This document shows positions 175 to 15,413 of a stretch of 24,893 nt of DNA, one piece after another (within the stretch, counting starts at the first letter, position 1; each line of letters opens with the position of its first letter). The stretch lies in the sequence record NC_043427.1. The stretch is one strand, 5' to 3'. The notes beneath the pieces are model-generated. The model made no database searches and was not told the DNA's origin. It was given only the letters and a program-made list of their open reading frames with translations. The position numbers and the translations under genes are program-made.

Positions 175-407
175 GTGGAGGAGGGAAGCTCCCTGTAGAC
201 CCAAGCGAGATAAAGCAGATGCCTGAAGAGCAGCTACAGATGGGTATGAGCCTCCTAGAGCAGTTCCTGAAGGAGATAAAGGTTAAGGTGGAGCCGGACG
301 ACAAGGGAGTAAAGAGGATTGTCGTTGTTAGCTGGTATTATGAGATGCCAGACGAGGAAATGGCAAAGATTTTCGCTAAGAGTATAGCGGAGAGCCTCAG
401 GTCATAA
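171..407 (+). CDS. Hypothetical protein (78 aa)
   Basis: ORF with GGGGGTGAGG RBS and genome-typical composition. Confidence 0.75.
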   Translation: MSGGGKLPVDPSEIKQMPEEQLQMGMSLLEQFLKEIKVKVEPDDKGVKRIVVVSWYYEMPDEEMAKIFAKSIAESLRS

Positions 408-441
408 TCCTCCTTCCAACCCCTTTCTTTAAGGTGGTATT

Positions 442-1068: not shown

Positions 1069-1294
1069 AATTGTAACTGAGGATTATGTTGCAATCATTT
1101 CTGTTAGAAGGGCAGCTTACCTCTATCCTCTTCTCCACTGTTTTGACTACAGGGACCCTAGGAGGTGTGTGATTGAGACTCTGAAGAGAAGAGGATATAC
1201 TGTCAAACACGGTTATGTTGATGAGCTAGGGGAGGTAATCGAGACTGAGAGGCATAAGATAGTTATTCAATATAATGAAAGAAAGGGTGATTGA
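1058..1294 (+). CDS. Hypothetical protein (78 aa)
   Basis: ORF overlapping the previous stop, in the same operon. Confidence 0.65.
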   Translation: MRIRIVTEDYVAIISVRRAAYLYPLLHCFDYRDPRRCVIETLKRRGYTVKHGYVDELGEVIETERHKIVIQYNERKGD

Positions 1295-1309
1295 GGATTG
1301 GTGAGGGGT

Positions 1310-1837
1310 GTGGCTAGAGAAAGAGAAGCGGGGTTTGAAAGGGTAATAGGGCTTGTTCTCACGCTTCCCCTAGTGCTTGTGATGACATGGCTCATATTCA
1401 ATGCAGCGGTAGCATTCGCTCAGCGAAAGGAGGAGACAGTTCAGGCTGGGTTGAAGGCAATAGAGACGTATAATGAGAGCACTGCTGTTGAGATACCTGA
1501 GGGCCCGATTGATTATCCTGTTGCCGTATTCGAGCCGGTTAATGGTGCTAGTCATTTCTCATACATTGAGGGCATAAAGATTGAGGACCTGAACCCAGGA
1601 GGATTTGATAGGATTATGGTTGCTGTAGAGGCGGAGCTGGGAAGCGGGGCAAGGGCAACTATAGTTCCGCCTACAGAGATAGCTGGGCCTGACACGCTTA
1701 GGTGGGTCCTTGACAGCGTCCCAACGGGTGATACTATAAAGAAGGTCCTCGTGTATATCTGGGGAGAGACGTTTAGAGCAGACCAGACCGCAACTGCAAC
1801 GATAAGGGTAACTGGGCTCCAGGCGAGGGTAACTTAA
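1310..1837 (+). CDS. N-terminally membrane-anchored beta-rich protein, putative virion/surface protein
   Basis: Hydrophobic helix VIGLVLTLPLVLVMTWLIFNAAVAFA then a beta-strand-rich domain; GTG at 1310 follows GGTGAGGGG; N-E-S sequon. Confidence 0.65.
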   Translation: MAREREAGFERVIGLVLTLPLVLVMTWLIFNAAVAFAQRKEETVQAGLKAIETYNESTAVEIPEGPIDYPVAVFEPVNGASHFSYIEGIKIEDLNPGGFDRIMVAVEAELGSGARATIVPPTEIAGPDTLRWVLDSVPTGDTIKKVLVYIWGETFRADQTATATIRVTGLQARVT

Positions 1838-1843
1838 TAATAA

Positions 1844-2278
1844 ATGGAGCATGATGTAACGATTGGTGAGAGCGAAGTGCCGGTTTGGGAAAGCACGTTA
1901 AAGGGTCTTGCAATCCCCAAGGTCTTCAACGAGCAAAGGACTGGAAACATTAACTTCACGGGGAGCGGGACCCAGGATATCGAAACATTTGCTCCAGCGA
2001 ATGGGTTTGCCTATGTTGAGGGTGTTTATCTCAACTTGCAGAACCCAGGTACAGATGCTGTAACTGTTGATGTTGTTGCAGTCTATGATGATGCAACGGA
2101 AACAGTACTTGCATCCGTTAACCTCTCTGCTGGAGGAGCATTTGAAGACTGGCTAAGGTGGGCTTACGACGCTAAGACGAATGGGAAGACTGTAAAGCAA
2201 CTCAAGATAAGGGCAACTGCTGCTAGCAGCAATTCAGCTCTCAACTACACTGTCAGGGTTACTGGGACAGCACTCTAG
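1844..2278 (+). CDS. Beta-rich putative structural protein (144 aa)
   Basis: T/A/V/N/G-rich alternating beta pattern; sequons NFT, NLS, NYT. Confidence 0.6.
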   Translation: MEHDVTIGESEVPVWESTLKGLAIPKVFNEQRTGNINFTGSGTQDIETFAPANGFAYVEGVYLNLQNPGTDAVTVDVVAVYDDATETVLASVNLSAGGAFEDWLRWAYDAKTNGKTVKQLKIRATAASSNSALNYTVRVTGTAL

Positions 2279-2287
2279 GTGAGTTGA

Positions 2288-2590
2288 ATGCCATTCTGGC
2301 AATCAGAGATTATCAAGGTTATAGTCAAGTACAAGGAGCCAGCAACAATAGAAAATGAGAAGGTTGAACGAGGGATACTAGAGACTGGTAACATTAGCTG
2401 GAGCTCGGGGGCCATAAACGAGTTCTTACTACTTCTTAACCCAAAGGGAGTTATGGATGTAGATTCGAAGAAGCAGCCAACACCATTTATGAATTCCGGA
2501 GGCAGGCCAACTGGGAACCACTTTAACTTAAACGCAAAGGCATCATATGAACACATTCCTCTTATTACATTCTCTGTCGAGGCTGCATAA
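2288..2590 (+). CDS. Hypothetical protein (100 aa)
   Basis: ATG after GGTGAG RBS; C-terminal half looks less gene-like. Confidence 0.6.
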   Translation: MPFWQSEIIKVIVKYKEPATIENEKVERGILETGNISWSSGAINEFLLLLNPKGVMDVDSKKQPTPFMNSGGRPTGNHFNLNAKASYEHIPLITFSVEAA

Positions 2591-2634
2591 GATTATTAAT
2601 AAAAGGAGCCTCTCATAATCTGTGGTGCTTTGTC

Positions 2635-2766
2635 ATGAGCTTTAATGTCCCTACCGAGGCTGTCTCGAAAGCTAGCCTGGACGACCCCAATTGGGGGACA
2701 GGGGCCCATGAAATATTGATAAGCAAAGATTCACTTACTGAACTAGTTGAGAAAGGCACGGCTTAG
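2635..2766 (+). CDS. Possible small hypothetical protein (43 aa, MSFNVPTEAVSKASLDDPNWGTGAHEILISKDSLTELVEKGTA)
   Basis: Fills the gap between neighbours; the frame is open from 2551, so it could be a frameshifted tail of the upstream gene. Confidence 0.3.
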   Translation: MSFNVPTEAVSKASLDDPNWGTGAHEILISKDSLTELVEKGTA

Positions 2767-2774
2767 GGGGTGGT

Positions 2775-3686
2775 ATGATGCCTCTATACAAGATTGAGGT
2801 GGGGAAAAGTAGCATAAAGGGTATTGTTGATGTTAATGGCGGTGTTAGAAGGAATCTCCAGCTTAGGCAGTTCTGGTCTCTCTTAACATCAATATTGCTT
2901 GACACGTCAGTAGCTCTCAGGGATACTGGAGGTTCTCAATATTCTGTTAACTATGGGAGTTCAAACCCGGACCTGGATGCTAGGATTGTGTTGGGCCAGG
3001 GAACGGACCCTCCTTCGTTTGGGCAGTATAACCTTGTGCAGTACTCGAAGGAGCTGCCTACAAACAAGGTTGTATCTGATGTCTCAGGTACTCCTCCATA
3101 CACGAGGGTAACTCTTTCAACTACTGCTGACATAGATGCACAGGAGCTCGGGATTAGGCAGGATATAAGATACTATTACCTGCTTACTAGGACTGTTCAG
3201 CAAGTAGCAATAGGAGACGTTCTGAACTATCATTTAGAGTTTAAGCAGCCCTGGCTGAAGAACTTTGCTTTATTCTGGTTTGGTAAGCTGAATAAGAGCA
3301 ATGTTGATGGGGTATTGGATGTTACTGGAGCTAGTAGGACGTTGAGGACGGCTGGGGATACAACTGCTGGAACTATGAGGCTGCTAATAAGCGAGGATAT
3401 TATAACGTGGAGCCCTACACTATATTCAATACCAAATGCGGTAGAGCTGACTGATTATCATTGGACCTTCTGGAGCAATGACAACTATGTTGTGCTAGTG
3501 TATCTTGCTAGCATAATACCGGCAGTAACTATGACGGTGAACACTATCGGGATAGTTCAGAGACTGTATGACTCGGGTGGGAACCAGTTTGATGCTCTCC
3601 TAGCTGCTTTGGACATATCATCCAGCCCATTGACCTTAGAAGCAAACAAGCACAACTTCATAATGCTGAAATTCGTGTTCCACTAG
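2775..3686 (+). CDS. Putative virion appendage/tail-fibre-like protein with a two-fold internal repeat
   Basis: IVLGQGTDPPSFGQYNL...AQELGI...LLTRTV resembles tail-collar/baseplate domains; the second half repeats the pattern (VLDVTGAS...NTIGIVQ). Confidence 0.5.
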   Translation: MMPLYKIEVGKSSIKGIVDVNGGVRRNLQLRQFWSLLTSILLDTSVALRDTGGSQYSVNYGSSNPDLDARIVLGQGTDPPSFGQYNLVQYSKELPTNKVVSDVSGTPPYTRVTLSTTADIDAQELGIRQDIRYYYLLTRTVQQVAIGDVLNYHLEFKQPWLKNFALFWFGKLNKSNVDGVLDVTGASRTLRTAGDTTAGTMRLLISEDIITWSPTLYSIPNAVELTDYHWTFWSNDNYVVLVYLASIIPAVTMTVNTIGIVQRLYDSGGNQFDALLAALDISSSPLTLEANKHNFIMLKFVFH

Positions 3687-3693
3687 CTCGGCT

Positions 3694-3706
3694 AAACCCT
3701 TATCAT
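3694..3706 (+). promoter_or_regulatory. Putative archaeal promoter (BRE/TATA-like)
   Basis: AAACCCTTATCAT in an intergenic gap about 40 nt before ATG 3741; the same AAACC(C)TT(T)A pattern recurs at 15438, 20537 and 21673. Confidence 0.45.
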
Positions 3707-3740
3707 AACTTTTTTGCTCTTACCTATTCTAGGGGTGCAT

Positions 3741-4526
3741 ATGAAGAGCGTTACGGCAGACCTTCCTTACCCCTACAAGTATGCTCATTGGCTCTGTGTA
3801 TCTATGAGAGCTAAGAGTATGAGTTATGAGGACAGGCTGGAGGCAGCCAGACAATGTTTAGCTGAGGGTAAGACGATAGGAATAGTAAACCTGTTTGGGC
3901 TCAAGCAGCCGTTGGACAGTCAGGGTTACAGGTACAGGTTTGACGGGGTTGCTTCAGTTGTTAGGAGGGATTCTAGGGTAGAGGTTGTTACTGAGAGGAG
4001 AGAGCGGGTTCCAGAGACGGTTTGGGAGAGGCTTGGTATGAGTGAGGAGCAGTACAGGCTGGGCATGAACTACTATAAAACTACTGCAAAAGAGCTGGCT
4101 GGAATATTTGATGTAAGCCTTGAGGAAGAGATTGAGAAGCTGTATAATAAGGCTTATGGGAGGATGACTCCTGAAGAGTTTGGAATAGAGCTTGCAAGGA
4201 TGATTAAGGACAGGCTTTTACAGCTTGTAAGAGAAGCTAGGAGGATGCAGGATGTTTTGAGAATGCTTGAGGAGAGGTATGGCATTAGGCTAGGCATAGA
4301 GGAGCCAACCGAGTTCATAAGGATTGTGGAGGAGGCTAGCCCTAGCAGCGTTATATCAATCCTATTCAAGGAGAACATCTACCAGATTGTCAGGTGGTAT
4401 AACAGGTTGAAGCGTGTTACAGAGCATGTCGAAGTTATAGAGAAGGCTGAGGAGTCTCTGAGGACAGGGAAGCTGCTAGTATCAGAGGAGGAGCTGAAAA
4501 GCTGCTTGAGGGCCTCCCAGAGCTAA
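3741..4526 (+). CDS. Hypothetical protein with N-terminal His/Cys domain (paralog of 24377-24577) and helical C-terminus; 3' end possibly frameshifted
   Basis: ATG 3741 follows GGGGTG; DLPYPYKYAHWLCV...AARQCLAEGKTIGIV aligns with the 24377 ORF. Confidence 0.75.
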   Translation: MKSVTADLPYPYKYAHWLCVSMRAKSMSYEDRLEAARQCLAEGKTIGIVNLFGLKQPLDSQGYRYRFDGVASVVRRDSRVEVVTERRERVPETVWERLGMSEEQYRLGMNYYKTTAKELAGIFDVSLEEEIEKLYNKAYGRMTPEEFGIELARMIKDRLLQLVREARRMQDVLRMLEERYGIRLGIEEPTEFIRIVEEASPSSVISILFKENIYQIVRWYNRLKRVTEHVEVIEKAEESLRTGKLLVSEEELKSCLRASQS

Positions 4527-4605
4527 GGGCAAGGTATGAGAGGCTATTACAGCAGTTTAAGGGAGGGCATACAGGTTTGAGATTCCAGGCTATGCTGTCG
4601 AGGAC

Positions 4606-5829
4606 TTGAATCATGTCTTTAGTATTAGTGGTGGGGATGTGTTTATAGTTCCATCTAGCTATGAAGTAGCATTTGTAACTCTCAACCCTGAATATACTGT
4701 AGCACTTGCCCTCTACCTCGACGTGAAGGTCGAGGGAACACCATTCCCCGTGAAGATTAGTAATGAGATAGTGCTAGAGCCGGGAGAGGTGGAGGTTAGG
4801 GAGAAGGCTGGGGTAGTAGAGGTTGTAGTAGCAGGAAGGAAGTACAGTGGTGCTCTGGCAAATCCAGAAGAGATACTGATGCCAGCGAAATTTGAAACAG
4901 TAGACATGCTCACAATTAGAGTTGATGTTGATGTGTTGAGGCTCATGAGGGACGTTAATACTGTAGCTTTATCGCTTGATGAGGATGTAGGCCTTGCTGA
5001 AGGAGACAACTGGGCTGTCATCGAGTTTGACAAGGATGGCAAGTTTGAGGCCGAGGCAGTGTTTCACGGTCGCTGGATAAGGCAGGCAGTACCTCCGAGC
5101 GTGTTTAGGGCGAGGAAGGATACAGTAACTATGAGGATTGCAAGGGATAGGCCTGTTATAGTTGAGGGTTATACTAGAGCTGGGCAACGGTTTGTTGCTG
5201 CAATAGGGCAATCTGTCGAGTCCCCAGGAATCCCATCAAGGTTCATATATCTTGAGCCAGAGTACATGAGGCCTAGTGAGCTCCTAGGCGTGCTTGAACT
5301 TGCATTTGATGTGGTGCTAGACTATTATAGCATATATGGAGTATTTACGCATTATGATTTCTTCAGTATAGGGCTCTCTAAAGGGGCTTCAGGAAGGTAC
5401 AGGTTGAGGCATAGCTTGCATGTGCCCAGGCCTATTAAGAGGGCAGTTGATATTGCAGGGGGGCTTCAAGCAGCACCGAGAGACGGTGTTTTAGACGTTA
5501 ATGGAGCCTTGCTAGAAGAGGTTGAGGAGCTACCTCGGGACATAGCAGAGGCAAAGGCTAGAGTAGAGGAGTATCAAATAGTTGAGGTATTCAACGTTAG
5601 AACGAAAGTGGATAGAGCTGAAATCAGGGATGGGGAGTTAATACTGTACAAGGGGAGGAGCGAGGTTCTAAGGATAAGCGTGCCTATATCAGGGGACTTT
5701 AGATTCGATAGCGAGCTGATACGGTACTTCACTCCAGGGGGGATAACGTTGATGGAGAGGGATGGGGAAGTTGCGTTGAGGTTTGAGAAGAGCTATAACA
5801 CATGGCTATTCGTGGAGGGGGTGAGATAA
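4606..5829 (+). CDS. PCNA/sliding-clamp-like protein, apparently two clamp-like units in tandem
   Basis: VAFVTLNPEYTVALALYL, RKYSGALANPEEILMP, LAEGDNWAVIEF and EAVFHGRWIRQAV...DTVTMRIARDRPVIVEG follow the archaeal PCNA motif order; the frame is open from 4561. Confidence 0.6.
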   Translation: MNHVFSISGGDVFIVPSSYEVAFVTLNPEYTVALALYLDVKVEGTPFPVKISNEIVLEPGEVEVREKAGVVEVVVAGRKYSGALANPEEILMPAKFETVDMLTIRVDVDVLRLMRDVNTVALSLDEDVGLAEGDNWAVIEFDKDGKFEAEAVFHGRWIRQAVPPSVFRARKDTVTMRIARDRPVIVEGYTRAGQRFVAAIGQSVESPGIPSRFIYLEPEYMRPSELLGVLELAFDVVLDYYSIYGVFTHYDFFSIGLSKGASGRYRLRHSLHVPRPIKRAVDIAGGLQAAPRDGVLDVNGALLEEVEELPRDIAEAKARVEEYQIVEVFNVRTKVDRAEIRDGELILYKGRSEVLRISVPISGDFRFDSELIRYFTPGGITLMERDGEVALRFEKSYNTWLFVEGVR

Positions 5830-6293
5830 TGAACATAACTATGGAGGACATACAAAGGTTTATGGTTGGCTCGATAGGGATAGCTCTGATAGTTGCTATG
5901 GCAACGTTCATGAGAGAGGCTTTACTAGGTGATGAGCAGCCAAAGAAAACAGTTAGGGTTGTCCCTGGGGATGCTGCTTCTGCAATCCACGAGGTCCTAA
6001 GCACTAATGGCTATGTTTACATTGCAGTTGGGGAGGGGTGCAGCTACTGTCCAATAGCGTATTCAATGGTTGAGCTTGCTGGGATTCCAGTGAGAAAGAT
6101 AGTTGATATAAGGAACCTTAGAGACGAGGATGAAGTATGGAAGTTTGCAAGGACAGTTGGCATATCATCTGCTCCAGCACTTCTTCTTGTCGAGGATGGC
6201 AGGGTTGTAAGGGTTATAGAGTTCTCTGGGGATGTTGAAAAGGATAGGGAGGAGATTAAACGTGAGAAAGCTTATCTTGGGGCTGCATTCTAA
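5829..6293 (+). CDS. Membrane-anchored thioredoxin/glutaredoxin-fold protein
   Basis: N-terminal hydrophobic helix, CSYC(P) CxxC, cis-Pro loop GISSAPALLLVEDG. Confidence 0.85.
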   Translation: MNITMEDIQRFMVGSIGIALIVAMATFMREALLGDEQPKKTVRVVPGDAASAIHEVLSTNGYVYIAVGEGCSYCPIAYSMVELAGIPVRKIVDIRNLRDEDEVWKFARTVGISSAPALLLVEDGRVVRVIEFSGDVEKDREEIKREKAYLGAAF

Positions 6294-6636
6294 AGGTGGC
6301 AGGGTTTCGTTCAGCGATTTCATTGAGATTGTAAAGAAGGAGAGGGCTTTTGCCCTGATATCAGGCCCTAACTGTAGGGAGTGTAGTGTGTTGAAGCACT
6401 TGCTGAAGGAGAGTGGTGCTGAGAGGTTCATAAAATACGAGCTTGAGATACCGGTTGATGATGAGGCTATTGAAGCTGCTCAGAAGGCGGGCATAATGCA
6501 TATCCCGATAATAGTTGACTGCTTCAGGGAGTGTGATATGATTATTGATGTGGACCCTTATAGGCAGTTTGAAGAGCTTGTTAGGAGGCTTGTTGGCTAC
6601 GGTTTAGCAGAGGTTAGGGAAGAGAAGGAGTTATAA
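6262..6636 (+). CDS. Thioredoxin/glutaredoxin-fold protein
   Basis: ALISGPNCREC CxxC and GIMHIPIIV; GTG 6262 follows GGAGG. Confidence 0.75.
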   Translation: MRKLILGLHSKGGRVSFSDFIEIVKKERAFALISGPNCRECSVLKHLLKESGAERFIKYELEIPVDDEAIEAAQKAGIMHIPIIVDCFRECDMIIDVDPYRQFEELVRRLVGYGLAEVREEKEL

Positions 6637-6680
6637 TAAAAGCAACTGACTTTAGCTTGTGGTAGAGAGTGGGTGAGAAT

Positions 6681-6812
6681 ATGGCGAGCCCAGTAGACCT
6701 TGCGGCATTGTTTGGGCAGCTAGTGGGGATTCTGCCCTGGATAATGGTAATCGCATTACTGCCGGTCTTGATAAAGAGCATAGTAGAGGCGATAAGGGAG
6801 TTCAGGGCTTAG
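6681..6812 (+). CDS. Small hydrophobic MASP-family protein 1 (43 aa, MASPVDLAALFGQLVGILPWIMVIALLPVLIKSIVEAIREFRA)
   Basis: GGGTGAG RBS; paralogous to 6826 and 20849; not in the ORF track. Confidence 0.8.
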   Translation: MASPVDLAALFGQLVGILPWIMVIALLPVLIKSIVEAIREFRA

Positions 6813-6825
6813 GGGGTGAGGAGTG

Positions 6826-6948
6826 ATGGCTAGTCCGTTCGACCTAAGTCAGATATTCCAGATGATAGTGCCAATAATGATGATACTCTTCGTGGTAATG
6901 CTTGTAAGCGTGCTCTTCAGGAGCCTCAGAGGAGCCTTCACAGCATAA
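6826..6948 (+). CDS. Small hydrophobic MASP-family protein 2 (40 aa, MASPFDLSQIFQMIVPIMMILFVVMLVSVLFRSLRGAFTA)
   Basis: GGGGGTGAGGAG RBS; paralogous to 6681 and 20849; not in the ORF track. Confidence 0.8.
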   Translation: MASPFDLSQIFQMIVPIMMILFVVMLVSVLFRSLRGAFTA

Positions 6949-7017
6949 CACTAGCAGCACTAACGAGGCAGCCAAGCATATATCCAATCAAAGCATCTTT
7001 TTAACCCAGGGGCAGAG

Positions 7018-7236
7018 ATGACTGAAGACTGCAAAGTAGGGGTTAGATGTCCTGTCTGCAATACAGTATTCTTCATTGATAGGATGGCTCTTGCCCAAGG
7101 AGAGATAAAGTGCCCACATTGTGGGGCTTCTCTGGTATTAGTTCCTAAAGACCCAACGCTCTTAGCTCAAATGGCATTGTACAAGGAGCTCAGCTTAATA
7201 TTAAAGAAAGTTGAGAGAATGCTCGGTGGGGACTAG
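7018..7236 (+). CDS. Zinc-ribbon protein
   Basis: CPVC...CPHC pairs with zinc-ribbon spacing. Confidence 0.8.
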   Translation: MTEDCKVGVRCPVCNTVFFIDRMALAQGEIKCPHCGASLVLVPKDPTLLAQMALYKELSLILKKVERMLGGD

Positions 7237-7238
7237 CA

Positions 7239-7508
7239 ATGACGAGCCAGATAAAGGAGCTGGAGAGGAGGGTTTCGAAGCTGGAAGATAAAGTGAATGA
7301 TTTGGAGGTTGCTGTTGGGGACTTGAAGGTTGCTATTGGAAGGCTTGAGGCAAAGATAGACACCCTTGTTCAGCAAAATAAGGAGCTAGTATCAATTATA
7401 AAGTCGAGGAATACTGGCTCCCTCACGGTTTTATTAATAAAATATGTCGTGTTCCCTCTTATTGTCATTCTAGGGGGGTTGATTGGGCTCAAGCTCACAC
7501 TTCCTTAA
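7239..7508 (+). CDS. Coiled-coil protein with C-terminal membrane anchor
   Basis: Regular heptads (LERRVSKLEDKVNDLEVAVGDL) followed by a hydrophobic helix. Confidence 0.75.
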   Translation: MTSQIKELERRVSKLEDKVNDLEVAVGDLKVAIGRLEAKIDTLVQQNKELVSIIKSRNTGSLTVLLIKYVVFPLIVILGGLIGLKLTLP

Positions 7509-7764
7509 ACAAATCATAAAGAAATGGTGGAGCTATGTTGGGAGGAATCCCCTGAAGAACTTGAGGAAGAGGCTTATACTGTGGTATGTTACCCTTGTTT
7601 TTTTGATATTAGCCGATGAATACGTTAAGGAGGGCTATATCCTGAGGCCTCGGGACTTCCTTATTCCATTTACGCATGAAAACCTTCTTCTCGTTTTAAC
7701 CCTAGCTTTTATAATTGCTTACTGGAAGCTCCTGGGTGGGAGGGATGATAGGGATAATAGCTGA
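7483..7764 (+). CDS. Two-TM membrane protein; true start uncertain (possibly ATG 7535 via a frameshift, or TTG 7561)
   Basis: Two hydrophobic segments; no good in-frame RBS/start near the 5' end. Confidence 0.6.
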   Translation: MGSSSHFLKQIIKKWWSYVGRNPLKNLRKRLILWYVTLVFLILADEYVKEGYILRPRDFLIPFTHENLLLVLTLAFIIAYWKLLGGRDDRDNS

Positions 7765-8749
7765 TACTTGGGGGATTTCGTTTAGGAGGGTGGCTTTCCT
7801 CACTGAGATGGGTCTTAGAAGGATTGGCTATGTTTCTAGGGTCTATGAGGTTAGGTCTCCAACGATATTATGGGGGTCTTTTGCGAGGATTATAATCGTG
7901 GGGGATACGGCTCTCCTCCTTAAGATGGGTTCACACGAGGTGTGGGCACCTTATTCAGAGCAGAGGGTTTGGTGGGCAGACACCCCCCTTGAGTATGGCT
8001 CGATTGTTACTAGGAGGATGGTTGATTTTCTCAATGCAAATTATAGGGTTGCAGCGGTAAGCGAGTACAACGCTAGGCAGTATAGGGAGCTGGGTGTTAA
8101 GGTTCACGGACTAATACCGAGGCCTGTTGATATCGGGGCAATAGCTAGGGCTGACAGGACCGTTTGGAGGAGGAAGTTTGGAGGAGAGTATATCTTAACG
8201 ATAGGGAGCGATACGATATTGTTAAGAGACAGATATCCAAGGAAGGGGCTTGACATATGCGATGCTGCCATAGGGCTAATTAAGGGAGAGCTTAAGAAGA
8301 GGGGGATAAGGACGGTTGCAGTTACTAACTGGAACATGATGAACTTCGATTACGTGCTACAGGCTGGTAGTCTATCAGATGAGGAGATATACTCCTTAAT
8401 AGTCGGGGCCAAACTGTTTATCTGGTGTAGCAGAAGAGAAGGATTCGGAATGCCACCCCTTGAGGCTATGGCTGCTGGGGTTCCGATTGTCTACTCGGAC
8501 GCTCCAGCACACAACGAGTTCCTTGTTGGCTATAAGGTGCCTCCAAGAGCTGAGCTCGAAGTAACACATAGGGAATCGGGGCTTCCAATGATTGTTTACG
8601 ACTTCTCAGCTAAACACTTCGCTGATACAATCCTTTATGCTCTAGAGGATATTGAGAATGACATGCATCTTGCCTATGTCGAGGAGGGTCTTGAGAGAGC
8701 GAAATACTTTGACGTTAGAAACGTTGCACAAATGTTAATTGAAATATAG
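7745..8749 (+). CDS. GT-B fold glycosyltransferase (GT4-like)
   Basis: RKG motif (YPRKGLD) and REGFGMPPLEAMAAGVPIV signature. Confidence 0.92.
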   Translation: MIGIIADTWGISFRRVAFLTEMGLRRIGYVSRVYEVRSPTILWGSFARIIIVGDTALLLKMGSHEVWAPYSEQRVWWADTPLEYGSIVTRRMVDFLNANYRVAAVSEYNARQYRELGVKVHGLIPRPVDIGAIARADRTVWRRKFGGEYILTIGSDTILLRDRYPRKGLDICDAAIGLIKGELKKRGIRTVAVTNWNMMNFDYVLQAGSLSDEEIYSLIVGAKLFIWCSRREGFGMPPLEAMAAGVPIVYSDAPAHNEFLVGYKVPPRAELEVTHRESGLPMIVYDFSAKHFADTILYALEDIENDMHLAYVEEGLERAKYFDVRNVAQMLIEI

Positions 8750-8774
8750 GGTATTATGGGGTGTGGGTGGTAGC

Positions 8775-8933
8775 ATGGATGTAGCAGAGGAGATAATAAG
8801 GAGGTTTCTGAACATAGTGATTACTATTGTCGTCTTGACAATGGCTCTCTTCATGTTCCAACCGCTCTTAGAGCGACTGGGGGTTGCTGGAGAGCTAATG
8901 ACAAGGGCAATAGTGTCAGCAGCGACAGGGTAA
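8775..8933 (+). CDS. Small membrane protein (52 aa)
   Basis: ATG after GGGTGG; hydrophobic helix IVITIVVLTMALFMFQPLL. Confidence 0.65.
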   Translation: MDVAEEIIRRFLNIVITIVVLTMALFMFQPLLERLGVAGELMTRAIVSAATG

Positions 8934-9068
8934 CGTTATAATTAATGGAGAATGTATTCTTGAGAGGAGGGGGGTGCATGGCATGAATAGTGTTTCTGCT
9001 GATAAGGTGGAGAAAGCAACGAAGGTTCTTCCGGCATCTGAGGAGAGTGCTCCCGGGAGGTGAGTGGG

Positions 9069-9752
9069 ATGGGGTGGAAGCAGTACCTTAGCATAACTTT
9101 CCCAGATTGCGATAGCTCGTGGGGTGATTTGCAGCCTATCAGGATAATCTTCCCTGATAGGGAGGTTTGTACTCGTGGAGTCCTTACAGATAGTAGCAAT
9201 GTCTACAGGGAGAGCCCGAAAAACGTAATGTATGGAGCATCGAAAGTGAGGATTAGAGTCAAGTATTATGTCATTTTCGAAGCTGGGCAATACGGGAACG
9301 TTGCAATTTATATTAGTACATGGGAGAACGATACTAGGAAGAAGTTTAATGGGCAGTATGAGCTAGTGGGCATTCTTCACTCACTCGATAGTCCCAGGTC
9401 TTACAACGTTATAGAGGAGAGAGAGGCGGTGTTTGAGTTTGAAGGAGCAACGATGAGGATATATGTTGATGGGCAAGAGCTAGCAAGCTACACTATTGAT
9501 GCTCCGCTCACCCACTTCAGCCTATGTGCTGCTACTAAGGAGCTATACGGCTCTACAGGAAGAGCTGGAGTTGCAATTGAACAAGTTGTTGGAGAATATT
9601 ACGACCAGTTTGAGGATATGATTGCTCAGTTCATGAGCATATTCAACGTAATGATACCGATGATGTTCATAATTATGATGTTGCCTATGGTGATTAGCCT
9701 ATTCAGAGGGATATTTGCAGAGCCTGGGGGTGGTAGGCGTGGCCAGGCTTGA
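9069..9752 (+). CDS. Beta-sandwich (ConA/LamG-like) domain with a C-terminal MASP-like hydrophobic helix; candidate adhesin
   Basis: VFEFEGATMRIYVDGQEL is a LamG/ConA-type motif; tail IFNVMIPMMFIIMMLPMVISLFRG; GGAGGTGA RBS. Confidence 0.55.
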   Translation: MGWKQYLSITFPDCDSSWGDLQPIRIIFPDREVCTRGVLTDSSNVYRESPKNVMYGASKVRIRVKYYVIFEAGQYGNVAIYISTWENDTRKKFNGQYELVGILHSLDSPRSYNVIEEREAVFEFEGATMRIYVDGQELASYTIDAPLTHFSLCAATKELYGSTGRAGVAIEQVVGEYYDQFEDMIAQFMSIFNVMIPMMFIIMMLPMVISLFRGIFAEPGGGRRGQA

Positions 9753-10047
9753 GTCTGCTCTAGAGGTTGCAGCTCCTGCTGCTGCTAGGGCTGCTCGGGG
9801 GGCTGCCGAGTTTGTTGCAGCAGAGGAGTTCCCAAGGCTAGTGAGGAACATTATACTAGTGAGCATGATGGGAGCAATGGGCTATATGATACTGAGAACG
9901 TTCCAGGGGGTATCCCCGGCTGTAAGCGAGTCTATAGAGCAGCTTCAGCCTGTAATAGCTACAACAATAGCTGTCGTTGTTCCTATGATGGTAATAGTCT
10001 TCGTGCTTGCAGTGATTAGAGCTATTGTTAGGATAATTGCGGGGTGA
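9739..10047 (+). CDS. Two-helix hydrophobic hairpin protein (coat-like)
   Basis: Two hydrophobic helices linked by RTFQGV, a motif shared with the next ORF. Confidence 0.7.
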   Translation: MARLESALEVAAPAAARAARGAAEFVAAEEFPRLVRNIILVSMMGAMGYMILRTFQGVSPAVSESIEQLQPVIATTIAVVVPMMVIVFVLAVIRAIVRIIAG

Positions 10048-10051
10048 GAAA

Positions 10052-10309
10052 ATGGCATTTATAGCTGGGATAGGGCTTGGAACTCTTTTATCAATACTTG
10101 CAAGGCTAGTCCTGGTAATAGGCGGGGCCATATCGGTATATTACATCTATAGGACGTTTAGCACAACGTTCCAGGGAGTGGAGCAGGCAGCACCAATAGC
10201 TGGGGGGGCTCTAGCAGTTATGGCTGCATTCTTCATGATGTTCCCAATATTCATGATAATGTTCATGATGATGACGCTAATGATAAGTCTGGTGAGGGTG
10301 TTTGACTAA
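10052..10309 (+). CDS. Two-helix hydrophobic hairpin protein (coat-like), Met-rich
   Basis: Two hydrophobic helices linked by TFQGV; GGGGTGAG RBS. Confidence 0.75.
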   Translation: MAFIAGIGLGTLLSILARLVLVIGGAISVYYIYRTFSTTFQGVEQAAPIAGGALAVMAAFFMMFPIFMIMFMMMTLMISLVRVFD

Positions 10310-10466
10310 TGACAGATTGAAGGAGGCGATATACTGGGTTCACACTATTTTCATGTCATTCTTCACTATGGCGGTAACGACGATGGCAATCGAGAAGACG
10401 CTTGCAATAATAAGGGAGAGAAGGTGGGTGTACACATACGAGCTTTATAATGAAAAAGAGGGATAG
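10302..10466 (+). CDS. Small hypothetical protein (54 aa, MTNDRLKEAIYWVHTIFMSFFTMAVTTMAIEKTLAIIRERRWVYTYELYNEKEG)
   Basis: TTG after GGTGAGG; fills the gap before the protease; not in the ORF track. Confidence 0.5.
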   Translation: MTNDRLKEAIYWVHTIFMSFFTMAVTTMAIEKTLAIIRERRWVYTYELYNEKEG

Positions 10467-10492
10467 ATTATAGGGACTGAGAGGGGGTAAGG

Positions 10493-11473
10493 ATGCCAAG
10501 AAAAGAGGTTGTAGCACATATCCTGGAGAAGCGGAGGAGCGAGCTCTTATCTAAGCCCAACGTTGTAGGCTATTCTAACGTTATTCAGAAGAGGATTAGG
10601 AGGGGCAGGGTAGTTGATGAGCCCGTTATACGTGTTTACGTGAAGAAGAAGCTCCCGAGGAACCTGCTGCGGCCTCAGGACTTGGTGCCAGAAGAGGTTG
10701 AGGGAATCAGGACGGATGTCGTTGAGATAGGGGAGGTAGAGGCATGGGCTTTACTGCAGCCTAGAGCTGCAGCTTCTCCACTCTATACTGGGAGATACAG
10801 GCCTGTGATAGCTGGGGTTTCGATAGGGCATTATCAGATAACTGCAGGGACCCTTGGATGGTATGTCAAAGCTCCTAATGCAGAGATACTATTTGCTAGT
10901 AATGCTCATGTATTCACACCTAATGCATCAGGGCAGGAGGGGCAGTATGAGGGAGACCCCATCCTCCAGCCTGGACCATACGACGGTGGCAGAAACCCAG
11001 ATGACAAAGTGGCAGAGTATGTTTGGCATAAGAGAGTAGTGCCTGAAGGCGAGGGAGGCATCAATCACATTGACTTTGCGGTTGCAAGACCAGTTGTTGA
11101 CTACCTTGTTAGAAACTATCACGGTACTCAACCCGTTCACGCTATTGGCCTACTATTCGCTGGGAGTAGCTCGATAACAGTTGTCTGCAAATGTAAGCAC
11201 ATCTATAATGAGGGCTATAGGTTCATAGATTTCACGGGAGCTGAGATGAAGTGTGTAGACCCCCTCGATGATGAGGTAACGTTGAGTGCAACGAAGGAGG
11301 GAAGGACAACGGGATATCACGGAAACATTATAACTGACGAGAGTGCTGCTGTCAGGGTTAATTATGGAGGCTTTACAGCGTATTTCGAGGATGTGATATT
11401 CTTTAGAAACCCCTTCGGGCAACCCGGGGACTCGGGTTCATTTGTCTTTATCCCAGATGCATCATTTGACTGA
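10493..11473 (+). CDS. Trypsin-like (PA clan, Nal1-like) serine protease with N-terminal pro-domain
   Basis: Catalytic triad motifs SNAHV (His), IDFAVA (Asp), GDSGS (Ser); also KEGRTTG and VRVYVKKK...TDVVEIG. Confidence 0.92.
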   Translation: MPRKEVVAHILEKRRSELLSKPNVVGYSNVIQKRIRRGRVVDEPVIRVYVKKKLPRNLLRPQDLVPEEVEGIRTDVVEIGEVEAWALLQPRAAASPLYTGRYRPVIAGVSIGHYQITAGTLGWYVKAPNAEILFASNAHVFTPNASGQEGQYEGDPILQPGPYDGGRNPDDKVAEYVWHKRVVPEGEGGINHIDFAVARPVVDYLVRNYHGTQPVHAIGLLFAGSSSITVVCKCKHIYNEGYRFIDFTGAEMKCVDPLDDEVTLSATKEGRTTGYHGNIITDESAAVRVNYGGFTAYFEDVIFFRNPFGQPGDSGSFVFIPDASFD

Positions 11474-11478
11474 GTGGG

Positions 11479-11919
11479 GTGAGAGGAGTGGGCTTGCAGC
11501 TTATTGAGCCACAGGATGGCAAGATTAATGCAAACTTTAAGGAGATATTCAACATCATTGTTAGGCCCACAACTAGCTATGATAAGATAGTGCTCCGTGA
11601 TAAGGACAGCAAACGTGTTATCACTGAGACTAGAAACCCCCCGGTAAACGAGGATTTACCTTTCACGGTAGCGGCATGGAATGGTGGTACATGGGAGATA
11701 GTTGGCATAGTAAGTAATAGTGAGACTGATAAGCTGGAGGTTCAGGTTAACGTTAGCAGTCCCTTTCCTCCACCGTCTCCTCCGCCTAGCAATATTAATG
11801 CTCAACTGGCTCTGTCAGTTTACACGATTAGCCAGATAACTATGGTTACTGCATTTGTGCTCGCTCTCACAAGGGTATTACGCTTGATAATGAAGAGGGT
11901 TGTTAGAAAGCTGGGATAA
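11479..11919 (+). CDS. Beta-rich ectodomain, Pro-rich linker and C-terminal membrane helix; putative surface/virion protein
   Basis: SSPFPPPSPPPS linker, hydrophobic tail, then basic KRVVRK. Confidence 0.7.
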   Translation: MRGVGLQLIEPQDGKINANFKEIFNIIVRPTTSYDKIVLRDKDSKRVITETRNPPVNEDLPFTVAAWNGGTWEIVGIVSNSETDKLEVQVNVSSPFPPPSPPPSNINAQLALSVYTISQITMVTAFVLALTRVLRLIMKRVVRKLG

Positions 11920-11965
11920 CCCTTTAAAACCAAGGATGACAATAGTAGATGGTTGGTGAAGGCGG

Positions 11966-12142
11966 GTGCCTCACCCAAAGAGGGTTGTTGTTGAGGATAA
12001 TCTTAGTGAGTTGCAGAAGGCCATAATGGAGCTGCACTCTCAGGGCTTCAACAGGATAGAGCTTCATTTTCATGGTAGCAAGAGGCACGCTAGGGAGGGC
12101 ATAAAGCCCGATTTCGTGCTTGTCAGGGCTTTCAGAGAGTGA
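11966..12142 (+). CDS. Small hypothetical protein (58 aa, MPHPKRVVVEDNLSELQKAIMELHSQGFNRIELHFHGSKRHAREGIKPDFVLVRAFRE)
   Basis: GTG after GGTGAAGG; genome-typical codons; not in the ORF track. Confidence 0.65.
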   Translation: MPHPKRVVVEDNLSELQKAIMELHSQGFNRIELHFHGSKRHAREGIKPDFVLVRAFRE

Positions 12143-12198
12143 GAACATGGGGGACCCCTATAAGGTGATGGATGACGAGAAGACTATAGGAGGCTACT

Positions 12199-12409
12199 TT
12201 GTCAGCGGAAGCAATGTACTATGCAGACATGATAGTAAAGCGTTCAAGCTTCATAGCGATTCTAGCGGAGAAGGCTGGACGCCCCCATTGACACGATGAT
12301 TCGGGAGATAAGGGCAGTAGAGATGCTCGGGAAAGCGATAGCGACGGCAGCAGCAAACGCTGCAAAGAGGCTTGAGGAGCTGAAGCAGGTAAGGGAGGCG
12401 GAAGGGTGA
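12199..12409 (+). CDS. Small helical protein(s) with ambiguous reading frame
   Basis: Either TTG 12199 (GGAGG RBS) joined by a +1 shift at C5 12282-12286 to the frame ending at 12409, or two coupled ORFs 12147-12299 and 12296-12409. Confidence 0.4.
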
Positions 12410-12415
12410 GGCGTG

Positions 12416-13459
12416 ATGGTGAAGACGGTAAAGGTTCCGGATGAGCTCTATGAGAAGCTAAAGGAGATGGCAGACTCCCAGGGCAAGGCAATACATGAGG
12501 TAATCTCAGGCCTCCTGGAGAGGATAGAGGTTGGGGAGGTTCAAATCAAGCTCCCAAAGCCAAAATTCATACCATTGAGGTATCCTGCATATTGTGTGTT
12601 AGGGAACCATAAGATTGACCCTGAGGAATACAGGAAGAATACTGGAAGAATACCATATGCTCTTTGGTTCCCAGAGCTAGGTGGAGTAATATGCATTGAT
12701 TGTTTGATAAAAGAGGTATTCACAAAGGAGGAGCAAGCGAAGGTTTTGACAAAACTTGAAGTAGAGATTAGGAAGCTTAGAGCAATCAAGAGACAGCTTA
12801 ACAAGGAAGTAGAGGAGCTTGCAATGCAGTATAGCGTTGCAGAGATATTTGCAAGGCTAGACTCGATTATTAATGAGATAAACGAAGCACTGAAGCTTGT
12901 AAGGAGCCTCGAAGACTATATTTGGTGTAAGGAGGAGGAGTGTGAGGAGAAGAAGAAGGTTGTTCTTGAGGCTATGGAGAAGATTGATGGCATAAAAGAG
13001 CAACTAGAAAAGCTGGAGCTACCCGAGAGTTGGGCTAAGAAGCTGATAAAGAAGGCTGCTTCAGAGTCATATACATCAACATCATATAGCAGCTACAGGA
13101 GGAGAAGGTGGGGGTCGATGGGATGGAAGCGGTTGAAAGAAAGAGCTATCAAGTCGAGGGTTATCAAAACGACGCATCGCCTTGTAGACGGCTCTTTGAA
13201 AGAGTACCAGCGAATCAACTACTACTTCCAGATGTACTTCTCGATTCCAGAGTGGTGGTTGAAAGAGGAGACGAAGCGTTACGAGATACTGCAAGTAGAG
13301 AAGGCGAGAAGCTTCTTAGTGCTACCCCAGGATATTACTCTGGAGGAGTTGGAGTCGTTGAGGAGAGAGATATCGAGCCTGATAAGAAAGGCGAGGAGAG
13401 GCAAACAGATATTTGCGACCAATGCGAGGAAGCGAAAAGAATCTGCAAGGGGAGGATGA
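12416..13459 (+). CDS. RHH, putative Zn-binding segment and coiled coil, fused in frame to an AbrB/SpoVT-like module (internal ATG 13118)
   Basis: VKTVKVPDELYEKLKEMADSQGKAIHEVI (RHH); C-x3-H...CIDC; MYFSIPEWWLK...FLVLP (AbrB-like). Confidence 0.7.
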   Translation: MVKTVKVPDELYEKLKEMADSQGKAIHEVISGLLERIEVGEVQIKLPKPKFIPLRYPAYCVLGNHKIDPEEYRKNTGRIPYALWFPELGGVICIDCLIKEVFTKEEQAKVLTKLEVEIRKLRAIKRQLNKEVEELAMQYSVAEIFARLDSIINEINEALKLVRSLEDYIWCKEEECEEKKKVVLEAMEKIDGIKEQLEKLELPESWAKKLIKKAASESYTSTSYSSYRRRRWGSMGWKRLKERAIKSRVIKTTHRLVDGSLKEYQRINYYFQMYFSIPEWWLKEETKRYEILQVEKARSFLVLPQDITLEELESLRREISSLIRKARRGKQIFATNARKRKESARGG

Positions 13460-13519
13460 AGCTAACGAGATTTTGCCTTGATGCTAAGGAGTATTGCATT
13501 GCGGTTGGGTGTGGATGGG

Positions 13520-13741
13520 ATGAAGGTTAGGGACTTCTGGAGGAGATACCTCGAAGCAGACGACGTTGAGAGGCTTGACTTGATTAAGGGGTTGCTAGAG
13601 AGGCATATCCACGCATGCTATACAATATACAAGGATAATAGAGTTCTTGGAGTTCATTGTCTAGTATCAATTGTGAACTCGTTTTTCCTTGATTTGATTA
13701 GGGTGCTCGGGGAGGAGAGAGATGGGCTGCGTGAGGAGTAG
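13520..13741 (+). CDS. Hypothetical protein
   Basis: In-frame ATG 13520 after GGTGTGGA; overlaps the next ORF. Confidence 0.6.
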   Translation: MKVRDFWRRYLEADDVERLDLIKGLLERHIHACYTIYKDNRVLGVHCLVSIVNSFFLDLIRVLGEERDGLREE

Positions 13742-13940
13742 AGTTCTCTGGGGAGATGTTTATGATAAGCTCTTTCATGTTGTTGAGGAGGCTGCTAGAA
13801 AGGGCAGGGTTGATATCGTTAAAGAGGCAAGGAAGCTGATTAAGGATTTGGAAATGTGGGACCCAAGTGAGGAGGTCTGCTATGACGAATTCTATAGTAG
13901 GATATCACGTCTGAAGGCGATGTTGAGGGTGAGAAAATGA
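13722..13940 (+). CDS. Hypothetical protein (72 aa)
   Basis: GGAGG RBS; ATGA overlap with the next ORF. Confidence 0.65.
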   Translation: MGCVRSRVLWGDVYDKLFHVVEEAARKGRVDIVKEARKLIKDLEMWDPSEEVCYDEFYSRISRLKAMLRVRK

Positions 13941-14125
13941 AAGTATCAACAGTGTTTAGAGTGTTTGTAACTGTCATTGCATTAATCCTATTTGCTTTCA
14001 GCATTCTCTACATCCCACCAGAATTTCTTTCGAATGATATATTTGCTGCAACACTATTTCTTTCGCTCTTCATGCTATTACTAATCGTTGTACTTCTCAT
14101 ATGGACCTCTCCAGCCCTCGATTAG
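13937..14125 (+). CDS. Two-TM small membrane protein (62 aa)
   Basis: Two long hydrophobic segments; GGGTGAG RBS. Confidence 0.7.
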   Translation: MKVSTVFRVFVTVIALILFAFSILYIPPEFLSNDIFAATLFLSLFMLLLIVVLLIWTSPALD

Positions 14126-14181
14126 GGTTTTGGCACATACAGACTAAGTAGTAAGGTTTATTACCCCCCGTGCCAAAACTG
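14125..14181. repeat. Inverted repeat flanking the recombinase promoter
   Basis: GTTTTGGCAC 14127-14136 and GTGCCAAAAC 14170-14179 with a 33-nt spacer that contains the TATA-like AAGGTTTATTA. Confidence 0.85.
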
Positions 14182-14201
14182 GTAGGGTGGAGGGATGCGG
14201 G

Positions 14202-15413
14202 ATGCCCAGGCCCTCTATCCAGAATGTCCTCGATTTAAGGCGGGATGAGGTCCTTGAGCTCCTTGGTCGAGGCATCCCAGCGGAGGATGTAGCGAAGAAA
14301 TTCGGGGTATCAAGGAGGACGCTATACCGCTGGCTAGAGCGTCAAGGCCTCACTGTTCAGAAAATCAGGGAGGAGTACCAGAAGCTGAAGGAGGAGCGTG
14401 AAAGGCGGAAGAGGGAGAGGCTAGCAGCTATTGGTGAGATACCGGAGGACTTCGAGAAGTTTGTTGAAATCGAGGAGGTAAGAAAGTTCCTTGACTGGCT
14501 CAAAGCAAGGAGGGTAACAACAGCAGTAGACATCGTGAGAACCCTACACAGGGTATGCCTAGACCTTGGTATCCACCCGATGCTACTGCTTGAGGATGAG
14601 GGGAAGGAGAAGCTGACGAGCCTCCTAGCCAAGTACAATGAAATGTATAAGAAGTGGACTGTGGAGAGCATTAAGGCCAATCTCAGGCTGTGGTACAAGT
14701 TCAACGAGAAGATGCCCCCCGCTATATTGAGCCTCGAAGCCTACAAGTCCAACATGGCTCACCTAGCGTGGTTCAACGTTAGCGATAGAGCCGTAATCCT
14801 TGAGACAGCCTTCCGCTTACTCGACAAGGAGCAGTTTGACAAGGTTAGAGCAGCTTTATTGTTCCTATTCTATACTGGGTCGAGGGCTGAAGCCCTGACT
14901 AACGTGAGGTTTGAGGCTCGTGAGGTTCAAGTTGATGGTAAGAGGATTACAGCGATAATAGCAATCACGAGGGAGAAGGGTAGGCACGGGAAAAAGCAGT
15001 GGGAGAAGCCTCTCCATCCAGTCATCTATGAAAAGTACATCAAGGGCAGGCTGCCATTCTCCCAGGCGGAGCTCAAGTGGTTGAGGAGGGTCCTCAAAGC
15101 GATATACAGAGAAGCTCTGAAGGGGCAGGAGAGCAGCGTGAAATATGAGTATGCTATGAAACACGTCATTCATATCTGGAGACACACGGCAGCAATGAGC
15201 ATGTTGCATGCGACGGACTGGAACGTTGGACTTGTTGCTGAGATTCTTGGGTGGGAGAGCCCCGATATTCTCCTCAAAATTTACGGCAGGATGCCTCCAG
15301 AGTGGAAGATTGCCCAGGCGTTGGGTGTAACTGTCGAGAGGCCTCCGTTCAGGTTTGTTTACGGGAATGAAGAAGAGAGGCTCAAGGAGCTTAGAATTCT
15401 GGAGCTCCCTTAA
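14202..15413 (+). CDS. Tyrosine recombinase with N-terminal HTH
   Basis: HTH (AEDVAKKFGVSRRTLYRWL); catalytic R (YTGSR), K (REKG), HxxR (HIWRH), W (LGWES, Cre-like) and Y (LKIYG). Confidence 0.92.
   Translation: MPRPSIQNVLDLRRDEVLELLGRGIPAEDVAKKFGVSRRTLYRWLERQGLTVQKIREEYQKLKEERERRKRERLAAIGEIPEDFEKFVEIEEVRKFLDWLKARRVTTAVDIVRTLHRVCLDLGIHPMLLLEDEGKEKLTSLLAKYNEMYKKWTVESIKANLRLWYKFNEKMPPAILSLEAYKSNMAHLAWFNVSDRAVILETAFRLLDKEQFDKVRAALLFLFYTGSRAEALTNVRFEAREVQVDGKRITAIIAITREKGRHGKKQWEKPLHPVIYEKYIKGRLPFSQAELKWLRRVLKAIYREALKGQESSVKYEYAMKHVIHIWRHTAAMSMLHATDWNVGLVAEILGWESPDILLKIYGRMPPEWKIAQALGVTVERPPFRFVYGNEEERLKELRILELP

Follow-up and report, generated by a model that had tools for sequence, protein, structure and literature searches.

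Evidence for a circular permutation in the second β-barrel of the NAL1-like serine protease from Aeropyrum coil-shaped virus

The stretch of DNA analyzed here (the window; 24,893 nt, NC_043427.1) was recognized by a protein search of a phage collection as the complete genome of Aeropyrum coil-shaped virus (ACV, HE681887; Spiraviridae), a circular single-stranded DNA. Its open reading frame (ORF) 25-326, located at 10493..11473 on the plus strand, encodes a 326-residue protein annotated in HE681887 as "putative serine protease." That this gene exists and what it broadly encodes was known before; at issue here is the order of its internal parts. The protein is very probably an intact NAL1-like protease of the PA clan (chymotrypsin fold), consisting of a NAL1_N-type domain and two β-barrels with a His139/Asp194/Ser314 triad, in which the second barrel is permuted. 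Along the chain, His139 and Asp194 are followed by the GLLFAGS block, KEGRTTG, GDSGS, ten residues, and the stop codon, and the chain ends 12 residues past Ser314, where canonical relatives turn into β11. The permutation is genuine and of ancient origin, and it characterizes a whole clade and not ACV in particular. We call the permuted form type A and the canonical form type B. The first-pass annotation of the window had placed the GLLFAGS segment (11141–11220) between the catalytic Asp and KEGRTTG...GDSGS, with the protein stopping ten residues after GDSGS; both statements are borne out by the translation, where residues 217–243 lie at 11141–11221. Its inference of an internal permutation that keeps the His-Asp-Ser triad is now supported by sequence, predicted structure, a canonical control, and covariation.

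Family identity and order of the second barrel

The family matches of the ACV protease that reached significance were NAL1-like or trypsin-like only. The PHROGs family phrog_20754 ("protease") matched query residues 1–326 at profile positions 2–290 of 324 (E value 4.7e-126). The best PDB match by sequence was rice NARROW LEAF 1 (NAL1), with E values of about 1e-5 (7e-6 for the best match) over ACV residues 30–178 (phmmer), and NAL1 was also the best match by fold (Foldseek E value 1e-14; VIA Z score 18.6). Streptomyces griseus protease B (SGPB) showed a weak sequence match around the serine. The phmmer alignment contains no gaps and places residue 30 of ACV opposite residue 116 of NAL1 (numbering of the 8pme construct, 88–458), and Lys53, His139, and Ser314 correspond to NAL1 Lys139, His234, and Ser385, respectively. 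NAL1 is a hexameric cage protease with a His234/Asp291/Ser385 triad, whose adenosine triphosphate (ATP)-stabilized trimer and hexamer are needed for activity and whose Lys139 contacts the γ-phosphate of ATP; it is an intracellular regulatory protease that cuts particular transcription-related proteins inside the cage (PMC12012508). His139, Asp194, Ser314, Gly219, and Gly224 are present in all 121 type-A rows, and Lys53 is present in 120 of them. This invariance of the triad and glycines suggests that type-A proteins are working enzymes under selection.

A word-based protein search gave >6,700 significant matches, most of about 330 residues, and the best 120 were listed and classified. The two forms were first distinguished in an 18-sequence alignment, and the 120 matches were assigned by motif regular expressions. 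In type A, which comprises ACV and most of the close matches, the Asp and KxGRT are separated by a block of the pattern FVGLxFAGS...VCK...I...GY, and the chain stops shortly after GDSGS. In type B, represented by four others in the alignment (P0055, P0070, P0072, and P0107), there is nothing at that site, and GLLFAGS with its strand and helix comes about 10 residues after GDSGS. The best 120 matches were divided into 100 type A, 10 type B, and 10 left unclassified by the regular expressions; the last belong to type A and carry altered serine motifs, for example GWSGT or GDSGN. The tail after the serine motif is 4–11 residues long in most type-A proteins and 37–41 residues long in nearly all type-B proteins. 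A block both before and after the serine was found in none of the best 120 matches or classifiable genome loci, and its presence at the two sites is mutually exclusive.

The ACV protease was modeled by AlphaFold2 from an 80-sequence type-A alignment, giving a predicted local distance difference test (pLDDT) score of 94.1 and a predicted template modeling score of 0.92, and the canonical P0107 was modeled as a control (pLDDT 83.5). After the Asp strand, the ACV model contains a strand (214–224), a second strand (228–233), a helix (234–238), and a short strand (243–245), with pLDDT values of 95–98 in this region. These elements are followed by β7 (265–270), β8 (274–290), β9 (295–305), Ser314, and β10 (317–321). 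In the P0107 model, three strands (225–230, 234–250, and 254–265), Ser275, and a strand at 278–281 come first, and a strand containing GLLFAGS (285–293), a strand (297–302), a helix (303–310), and a short strand (312–314) come afterward. The order of the elements is β11-β12-helix-short strand-β7-β8-β9-Ser-β10 in ACV and β7-β8-β9-Ser-β10-β11-β12-helix-short strand in P0107. In the predicted structures, the same four elements are moved as one piece from the end to the start of the second barrel, which is a circular permutation cut in the β10–β11 hairpin.

Collinear structural alignments by VIA compared the ACV model and the P0107 control on the same targets. The two-barrel fold of the PA clan, with six strands per barrel and the active site between the barrels, is present in the ACV model, as indicated by Z scores of 12.8–13.2 at 2.2–2.3 Å to alpha-lytic protease, SGPB, and 2sfa, and so are the triad order His, Asp, Ser and a GDSG-type motif; the canonical strand order of the second barrel (β7 to β12, then the C-terminal helix) is absent. 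On alpha-lytic protease (198 residues), the ACV model aligned with 147 residues in chain positions 1–152 (chymotrypsin 15A–207; Z score 12.8, 2.3 Å), and P0107 aligned with 180 residues in positions 1–198 (Z score 18.6). The corresponding ranges on 2sfa (191 residues) were 149 residues in positions 1–155 for ACV and 180 residues in positions 1–191 for P0107 (Z score 19.8). On SGPB, the ACV alignment ended at chymotrypsin 207–208 and that of P0107 at 242. On NAL1, ACV covered residues 89–397 (Z score 18.6), starting at model residue 1, and P0107 covered residues 96–447/449 (Z score 25.6). The collinear alignment to proteases of the alpha-lytic and SGPB type stopped at ACV model residue 322–323, whereas P0107 reached chymotrypsin 242–245. 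Although its model is of lower confidence, the control gave alignments that were better and reached further than those of ACV. The 31–33 residues absent from the ACV alignment are as many as the displaced elements comprise. The sequential Foldseek alignment of ACV with NAL1 was poor (root-mean-square deviation of ~7 Å and template modeling score of 0.58) despite the E value of 1e-14.

The 60 residues that follow the serine motif in ten type-B proteins were the sole input for a tail profile, which found the internal block in 110 of 110 other proteins, including ACV residues 216–240 at an E value of 9.6e-9. The best of 660 shuffled or reversed sequences gave an E value of 0.55. Aligned without gaps, ACV residues 217–238 share 13 of 22 identities with the P0107 tail (z = 14.3 against 500 shuffles), and this match extends from the motif across the strand behind it to where the helix begins. 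The resemblance of the ACV block to canonical tails is thus far beyond chance.

Covariation was analyzed by corrected mutual information on 95 non-redundant type-A sequences. Among the 51,360 pairs, 221–309 ranked second and 229–309 ranked eighth (z = 9.1 and 7.8, respectively). Ser314 comes five positions after residue 309; residue 221 is third in GLLFAGS, and residue 229 opens the next strand. We take residue 309 to be chymotrypsin position 190 and residue 221 to be position 213, with Gly224 set on Gly216; the positions to which 221, 229, and 309 map presumably wall the S1 pocket in classical S1 proteases. The states of 221-229-309 were G-S-L (64), L-T-S (18), L-G-I (17), G-G-L (10), L-T-A (3), and L-T-G (2; ACV and P0002). 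A size swap is apparent, in which the change of residue 221 from Leu to Gly is accompanied by residue 309 becoming Leu. At the equivalent positions, 28 of 33 type-B proteins likewise have L-T-S. Block residues thus covary with the neighbor of the serine loop as walls of the S1 pocket would, and this support for the permutation is independent of any model.

It is quite improbable that there is no permutation and that the block is an unrelated hairpin, bearing a GLxFAG-like motif and inserted behind the first barrel, while the true C-terminal strands were lost, which would leave the second barrel incomplete or closed differently. The block is placed indirectly, and no two-copy intermediate was found among the best 120 matches or genome loci, both of which would suit an insertion. 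However, the similarity runs into the following strand and helix (13/22, z 14.3; profile E value of 1e-8, 110/110), the block has the strand-strand-helix-short strand series of the canonical tail, and it covaries with the residue next to the serine loop. The strict exclusivity of its presence before and after the serine and the match between its size and the 31–33 residues missing from the collinear alignment also argue against an insertion. An ACV-specific rearrangement, a sequencing or assembly artifact, or a recent scramble in a decaying gene, which is suggested by the unusual order itself and nothing else, has practically no chance and is refuted by the same order in 100 of the 120 best matches, in several archaeal phyla, and on an independent contig at 48% identity, together with the invariance of the triad and block glycines in 121 sequences and the very confident model.

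Distribution and origin of the permuted form

Genome loci were found by a search with a 10-sequence alignment. In named genomes, type A was found at 11 classifiable loci, which belong to Acidilobaceae, Thermoprotei, Bathyarchaeia, and Brockarchaeota with one exception. The exception (L007, DATKWY010000078.1, 5.6 kb) bears a Candidatus Desulfaltia label, nests among Bathyarchaeia on the tree with identical motif spacing, and is probably a mis-binned contig. All 23 classifiable type-B loci in named genomes are bacterial (Chloroflexota, Bacillota, Chlorobaculum, Myxococcota, and Woeseiaceae). An Acidilobaceae genome carries a cellular type-A copy among housekeeping genes; only 2 of the 151 sampled genomes of that class matched the ACV query, and the distribution is therefore patchy. 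The statement in the first-pass annotation that the GL(L)FAG segment follows GDSGS in Nal1-like and other trypsin-fold proteases holds in P0055, P0070, P0072, and P0107, in the 23 bacterial loci, and in the NAL1 structures. Its view of the ACV order as a departure from the family norm stands with respect to the bacterial sisters, plant NAL1, and classical S1 proteases, but not among the closest relatives of ACV and the classifiable archaeal loci, where the permuted order is itself the norm: homolog alignment found it conserved in 100 of the 120 best matches. It follows that the event is old, extends across the clade, and reached the virus by inheritance, and that it is no peculiarity of ACV.

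When 35 type-A and 28 type-B sequences were placed in a quick maximum-likelihood tree, rooted at the midpoint, type A formed one side of a branch with a Shimodaira–Hasegawa-like approximate likelihood ratio test support of 99, and one change of state sufficed, as opposed to about 21 when the labels were shuffled. Near the base of type A lies ACV, grouped with P0002 (support 98). The type-B sequences nearest to type A are P0107, P0070, and a Myxococcota sequence. The tree itself gives no direction, and we take the change to have run from canonical to permuted because every other trypsin-fold protease has, to our knowledge, the canonical order. It is strongly supported that the permutation arose once, from canonical ancestors like the present bacterial forms, and that it defines a large, mostly archaeal clade.

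Here, we propose how the permuted barrel may have arisen. The classical route of permutation is tandem duplication followed by loss of the outer parts. The second barrel would have been tandemly duplicated and then have lost its outer parts. In the present chain, β11 (the GLxFAGS substrate-binding wall), β12, and the C-terminal helix stand directly after the first barrel and before β7, with the cut in the β10–β11 hairpin and a new linker of ~20 residues from the helix to β7. It is likewise strongly supported that the three-dimensional fold and the S1 pocket are kept, with the connectivity alone altered, and that ACV and the related metagenomic virus described below inherited this form.

Several points weigh against the permutation in a NAL1-like enzyme as presented here. 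The sole Pfam match of the ACV protease, NAL1_N at residues 33–72, scored 24.3 bits and falls below the gathering cut-off of 27 bits. The canonical placement of the block rests on its homology, the order of the elements, the ranges of the alignments, and the covariation in conjunction with a predicted model, and not on direct superposition. The covariation measure ignores shared ancestry and rests on 95 sequences, and the tree is a quick one, rooted at the midpoint and containing neither plant NAL1 nor another outgroup. The duplication route is hypothetical, as none of the best 120 matches or genome loci carried the block twice.

Several variations were observed among the relatives. In a type-A subgroup (P0041, P0077, P0086, P0089, P0099, and P0117), GWSGT, GWSGS, or GYSGS replaces GDSGS; the same six proteins have Arg for Trp two residues past the motif and keep His, Asp, and Ser, and they may be a specificity or regulatory variant. 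An insertion of ~35 residues containing Cys, located between His and Asp (alignment columns 210–243), is present in most type-A and some type-B proteins and absent from ACV, P0002, P0003, and P0039; its site in ACV is around residues 180–190 (window 11030–11070). In NAL1, an extra strand in the first barrel mediates hexamer stacking. ACV lacks the insertion and may therefore assemble differently. The type-A protein P0039 (L008:2992-4602; Brockarchaeota) has a 245-residue C-terminal extension containing an immunoglobulin-like domain (Big_3_5), and the new C-terminus after β10 therefore tolerates fusions. P0072, which has the canonical order and is the only protein of its group that was scanned, carries a second NAL1_N at its C-terminus (residues 370–415, Pfam E value 1.4e-12). 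Its close homologs P0096, P0106, P0108, P0112, P0114, and P0116 are also of canonical order and have like motif spacing, with lengths of 428–429 residues including P0072. This second NAL1_N looks like a remnant of tandem duplication, an event that could also yield a barrel permutation. A frame of ~90–100 residues (L047/L048; G001:C1:440159-440374, minus strand), located ~0.9 kb from the Acidilobaceae protease gene, shares 56% identity with ACV protease residues 18–87 only and looks like a stand-alone copy of a NAL1_N-like domain. A gene of the metallo-β-lactamase fold (Lactamase_B, E value 3e-30) lies <3 kb from the protease in 6 of the 11 archaeal loci in varying orientation (L006:4013-4672 and ORFs in L009, L011, L013, L014, and L015; Acidilobaceae and Bathyarchaeia).

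Table 1. Landmarks of the ACV protease gene in window coordinates
Feature	Position	Strand	Basis
NAL1-like trypsin-fold serine protease, permuted (type A) architecture	10493..11473	+	ORF translation, annotation, profile and fold matches
NAL1_N-like N-terminal domain, residues ~20–80	10550..10732	+	Pfam NAL1_N (below cut-off), NAL1 alignment
Lys53 codon	10649-10651	+	aligns with NAL1 Lys139
Catalytic His139 codon, motif SNAHV (FASNAHV)	10907..10909	+	aligns with NAL1 His234
Catalytic Asp194 codon, motif IDFAVA (HIDFAVA)	11072..11074	+	invariant in 18-sequence and larger alignments
Relocated block, residues 209–255 (strand, strand, helix, short strand, linker)	11117..11257	+	model secondary structure, tail homology, covariation
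Residues 217–243, beginning IGLLFAGS	11141-11221	+	translation
GLLFAGS, residues 219–225, within predicted strand 214–224	inside 11117..11257	+	translation and model
Remainder of second barrel in canonical order, residues 256–321	11258..11455	+	model secondary structure, collinear structural alignment
KEGRTTG, from residue 268	from 11294	+	translation
GDSGS, residues 312–316, with catalytic Ser314 at 11432-11434	11426..11440	+	aligns with NAL1 GDSGS, Ser385
Ten-residue C-terminal tail (β10 and 5 residues) and stop codon (11471-11473)	11441..11473	+	translation

Viral context and possible function

ACV is the sole listed member of its family in the ICTV profile. P0002, with 48% identity to the ACV protease, is encoded on a metagenomic contig of 39,965 bp (L002; ENA ERZ23491094 scaffold_704), whose positions 1–14532 contain collinear homologs of ACV ORFs 19, 21, 22, 23, 25, 27, and 29. 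The collinear homologs extend to the 408-residue tyrosine recombinase of ACV (57% identity) and a glycosyltransferase (45%), and a shorter copy is found in L003. This contig is a probable second spiravirus-like genome or provirus. The collinearity shows that ACV is not without relatives, having at least this one, and that the two share a module that includes the protease. The ACV protease gene is flanked by small hydrophobic proteins and has the same place in L002; Pfam gave only sub-threshold noise on the neighboring ORFs 21–24, 26, and 27. Two other metagenomic contigs, L045 (28,976 bp) and L046 (22,305 bp), encode type-A proteases with 46% and 41% identity to ACV, respectively. Their genes are mostly unassigned, with glycosyltransferases among the rest, and lie largely on one strand, the only other gene in common with ACV is a glycosyltransferase, and both contigs look viral or mobile. 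L046 also has an intein-containing gene.

Infection by ACV is chronic and non-lytic, and its virions contain two major proteins of 23 and 18.5 kDa and minor ones of 5–13 kDa (PMC7416610). A sequence scan of the protease found no signal peptide or membrane segment, and over 19-residue windows its hydrophobicity peaks at the buried GLLFAGS strand. From the homology to NAL1 and the gene position, the ACV enzyme would be a cytoplasmic endoprotease and probably forms a NAL1-style oligomer stabilized by ATP. Tentatively, its most likely role would be to cleave a small number of viral proteins from neighboring genes while virions assemble, and maturation of structural proteins is possible as judged by gene position only.

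A somewhat less likely alternative is that the same enzyme acts on host proteins, as NAL1 does on regulators, and supports chronic non-lytic infection with no part in virion processing. Such a role would fit the chronic infection without lysis, the cellular archaeal copies placed among housekeeping genes without viral context, and the nature of NAL1 as a regulatory cage protease with particular targets (PMC12012508). On the other side, the gene keeps its place between ACV and L002 in a run of small hydrophobic proteins, and other close homologs are on virus-like contigs, although both observations are weakly discriminating. Export of the protease and cutting of the host S-layer for virion release is highly improbable; S-layer cutting was one of the two roles raised in the first-pass annotation, beside maturation of structural proteins. 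The egress of a non-enveloped virion through the S-layer needs some explanation, but cutting by this enzyme is unlikely because it has no export signal and release is non-lytic; moreover, the model shows a charged helix at the N-terminus, and NAL1, its closest characterized relative, is an intracellular cage protease. The protease, one of very few ACV genes with recognizable activity and kept in L002, offers a practical handle on virion building.

Significance and comparison with known proteases

Few enzyme scaffolds have received as much study as the chymotrypsin fold, whose order of strands is commonly taken to be invariable. The Nal1_C model of Pfam had no match in ACV or in the type-A proteins P0002 and P0031, whereas the canonical P0107 and P0070 do match; its failure on type A is probably because of the permutation. 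P0002 and P0031 had no Pfam match of any kind, and type-B proteins are recognized by Nal1_C, Trypsin_2, or NAL1_N. NCBIfam had no match for ACV and the two type-A homologs tested and no model for type A or type B, and PADLOC reported nothing for the ACV protease or its relatives. The permutation explains why type-A proteins escape domain annotation. Models expecting the canonical order miss type A and therefore under-call proteases in archaea and their viruses. In full text covering few subscription journals, we found no permuted trypsin-fold or PA-clan protease and no prokaryotic relative of NAL1, and an earlier description is possible; one paper names both circular permutation and chymotrypsin-like proteases, generically only. 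The type-A enzymes could plausibly represent an undescribed natural circular permutation in one barrel of the chymotrypsin fold, defining an unrecognized family of >100, probably thousands, of archaeal and archaeal-virus members missed by Pfam and NCBIfam, with AFV8-like serine-terminal proteases as possible far-diverged members. If the AFV8-type proteases do belong to it, the permuted trypsin fold would be an old common trait of archaeal mobile elements. The type-A clade keeps the triad and S1 pocket and moves the substrate-binding wall and last strand across the serine, and it is a ready test of folding order and connectivity. The free C-terminus just after β10 is also a new fusion point.

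AFV8 ORF267b (Betalipothrixvirus, L049:20943-21746) is, like the ACV protease, a trypsin-type protein of an archaeal virus, and it ends 4 residues after its GDSGG; it has the motifs AWHNV, DVAIVE, and GDSGG, with a Gly-rich strand-like stretch (YGVISATNG) upstream. Unlike ACV, it has 267 residues and no NAL1_N region. It scored 2.7 bits against the type-A profile with an hhalign probability of 9%. These scores do not establish a permuted state shared by descent, and the AFV8 protein could be a far-removed type-A member or an independent case. The barrels of alpha-lytic protease and S. griseus proteases A and B (2alp, 3sgb, and 2sfa) superpose with the ACV model at 2.1–2.3 Å (Z score ~13), and the GLxxxGS pattern of the substrate-binding strand of SGPB is presumably the same as in ACV. 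These proteases are canonical, lack NAL1_N, and are secreted with a pro-region, and ACV is their collinear partner for the first 152–155 residues only.

The type-B bacterial proteases share 36–41% identity with ACV over the common parts, the same N-terminal domain, and the motifs TDVVEIG, SNxHV, IDxAVA, KxGRT, GDSGS, and GLLFAGS, with the L-T-S pocket seen in part of type A. What differs is the position of three elements, namely the strand with GLLFAGS, the one behind it, and the helix, which in type B come after the serine. NAL1 (PDB IDs 7y77, 8hau, 8pme, 8pmg, 8pmi, and 8pn2) has, as ACV probably does, a NAL1_N-type domain and, like ACV, a two-barrel serine protease at ~20% identity, but it is canonical and has ~50 more structured residues past the end of ACV. 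ATP binding and the hexamer are known for NAL1 and are predicted at most for ACV, which also differs from many of its own relatives in lacking the ~35-residue His-Asp insertion. Clearly homologous to the NAL1 and S1-type proteases and expected to work like them, the ACV enzyme departs from the Nal1_C model and, in how the strands of its second barrel are ordered, from one defining feature of the fold.

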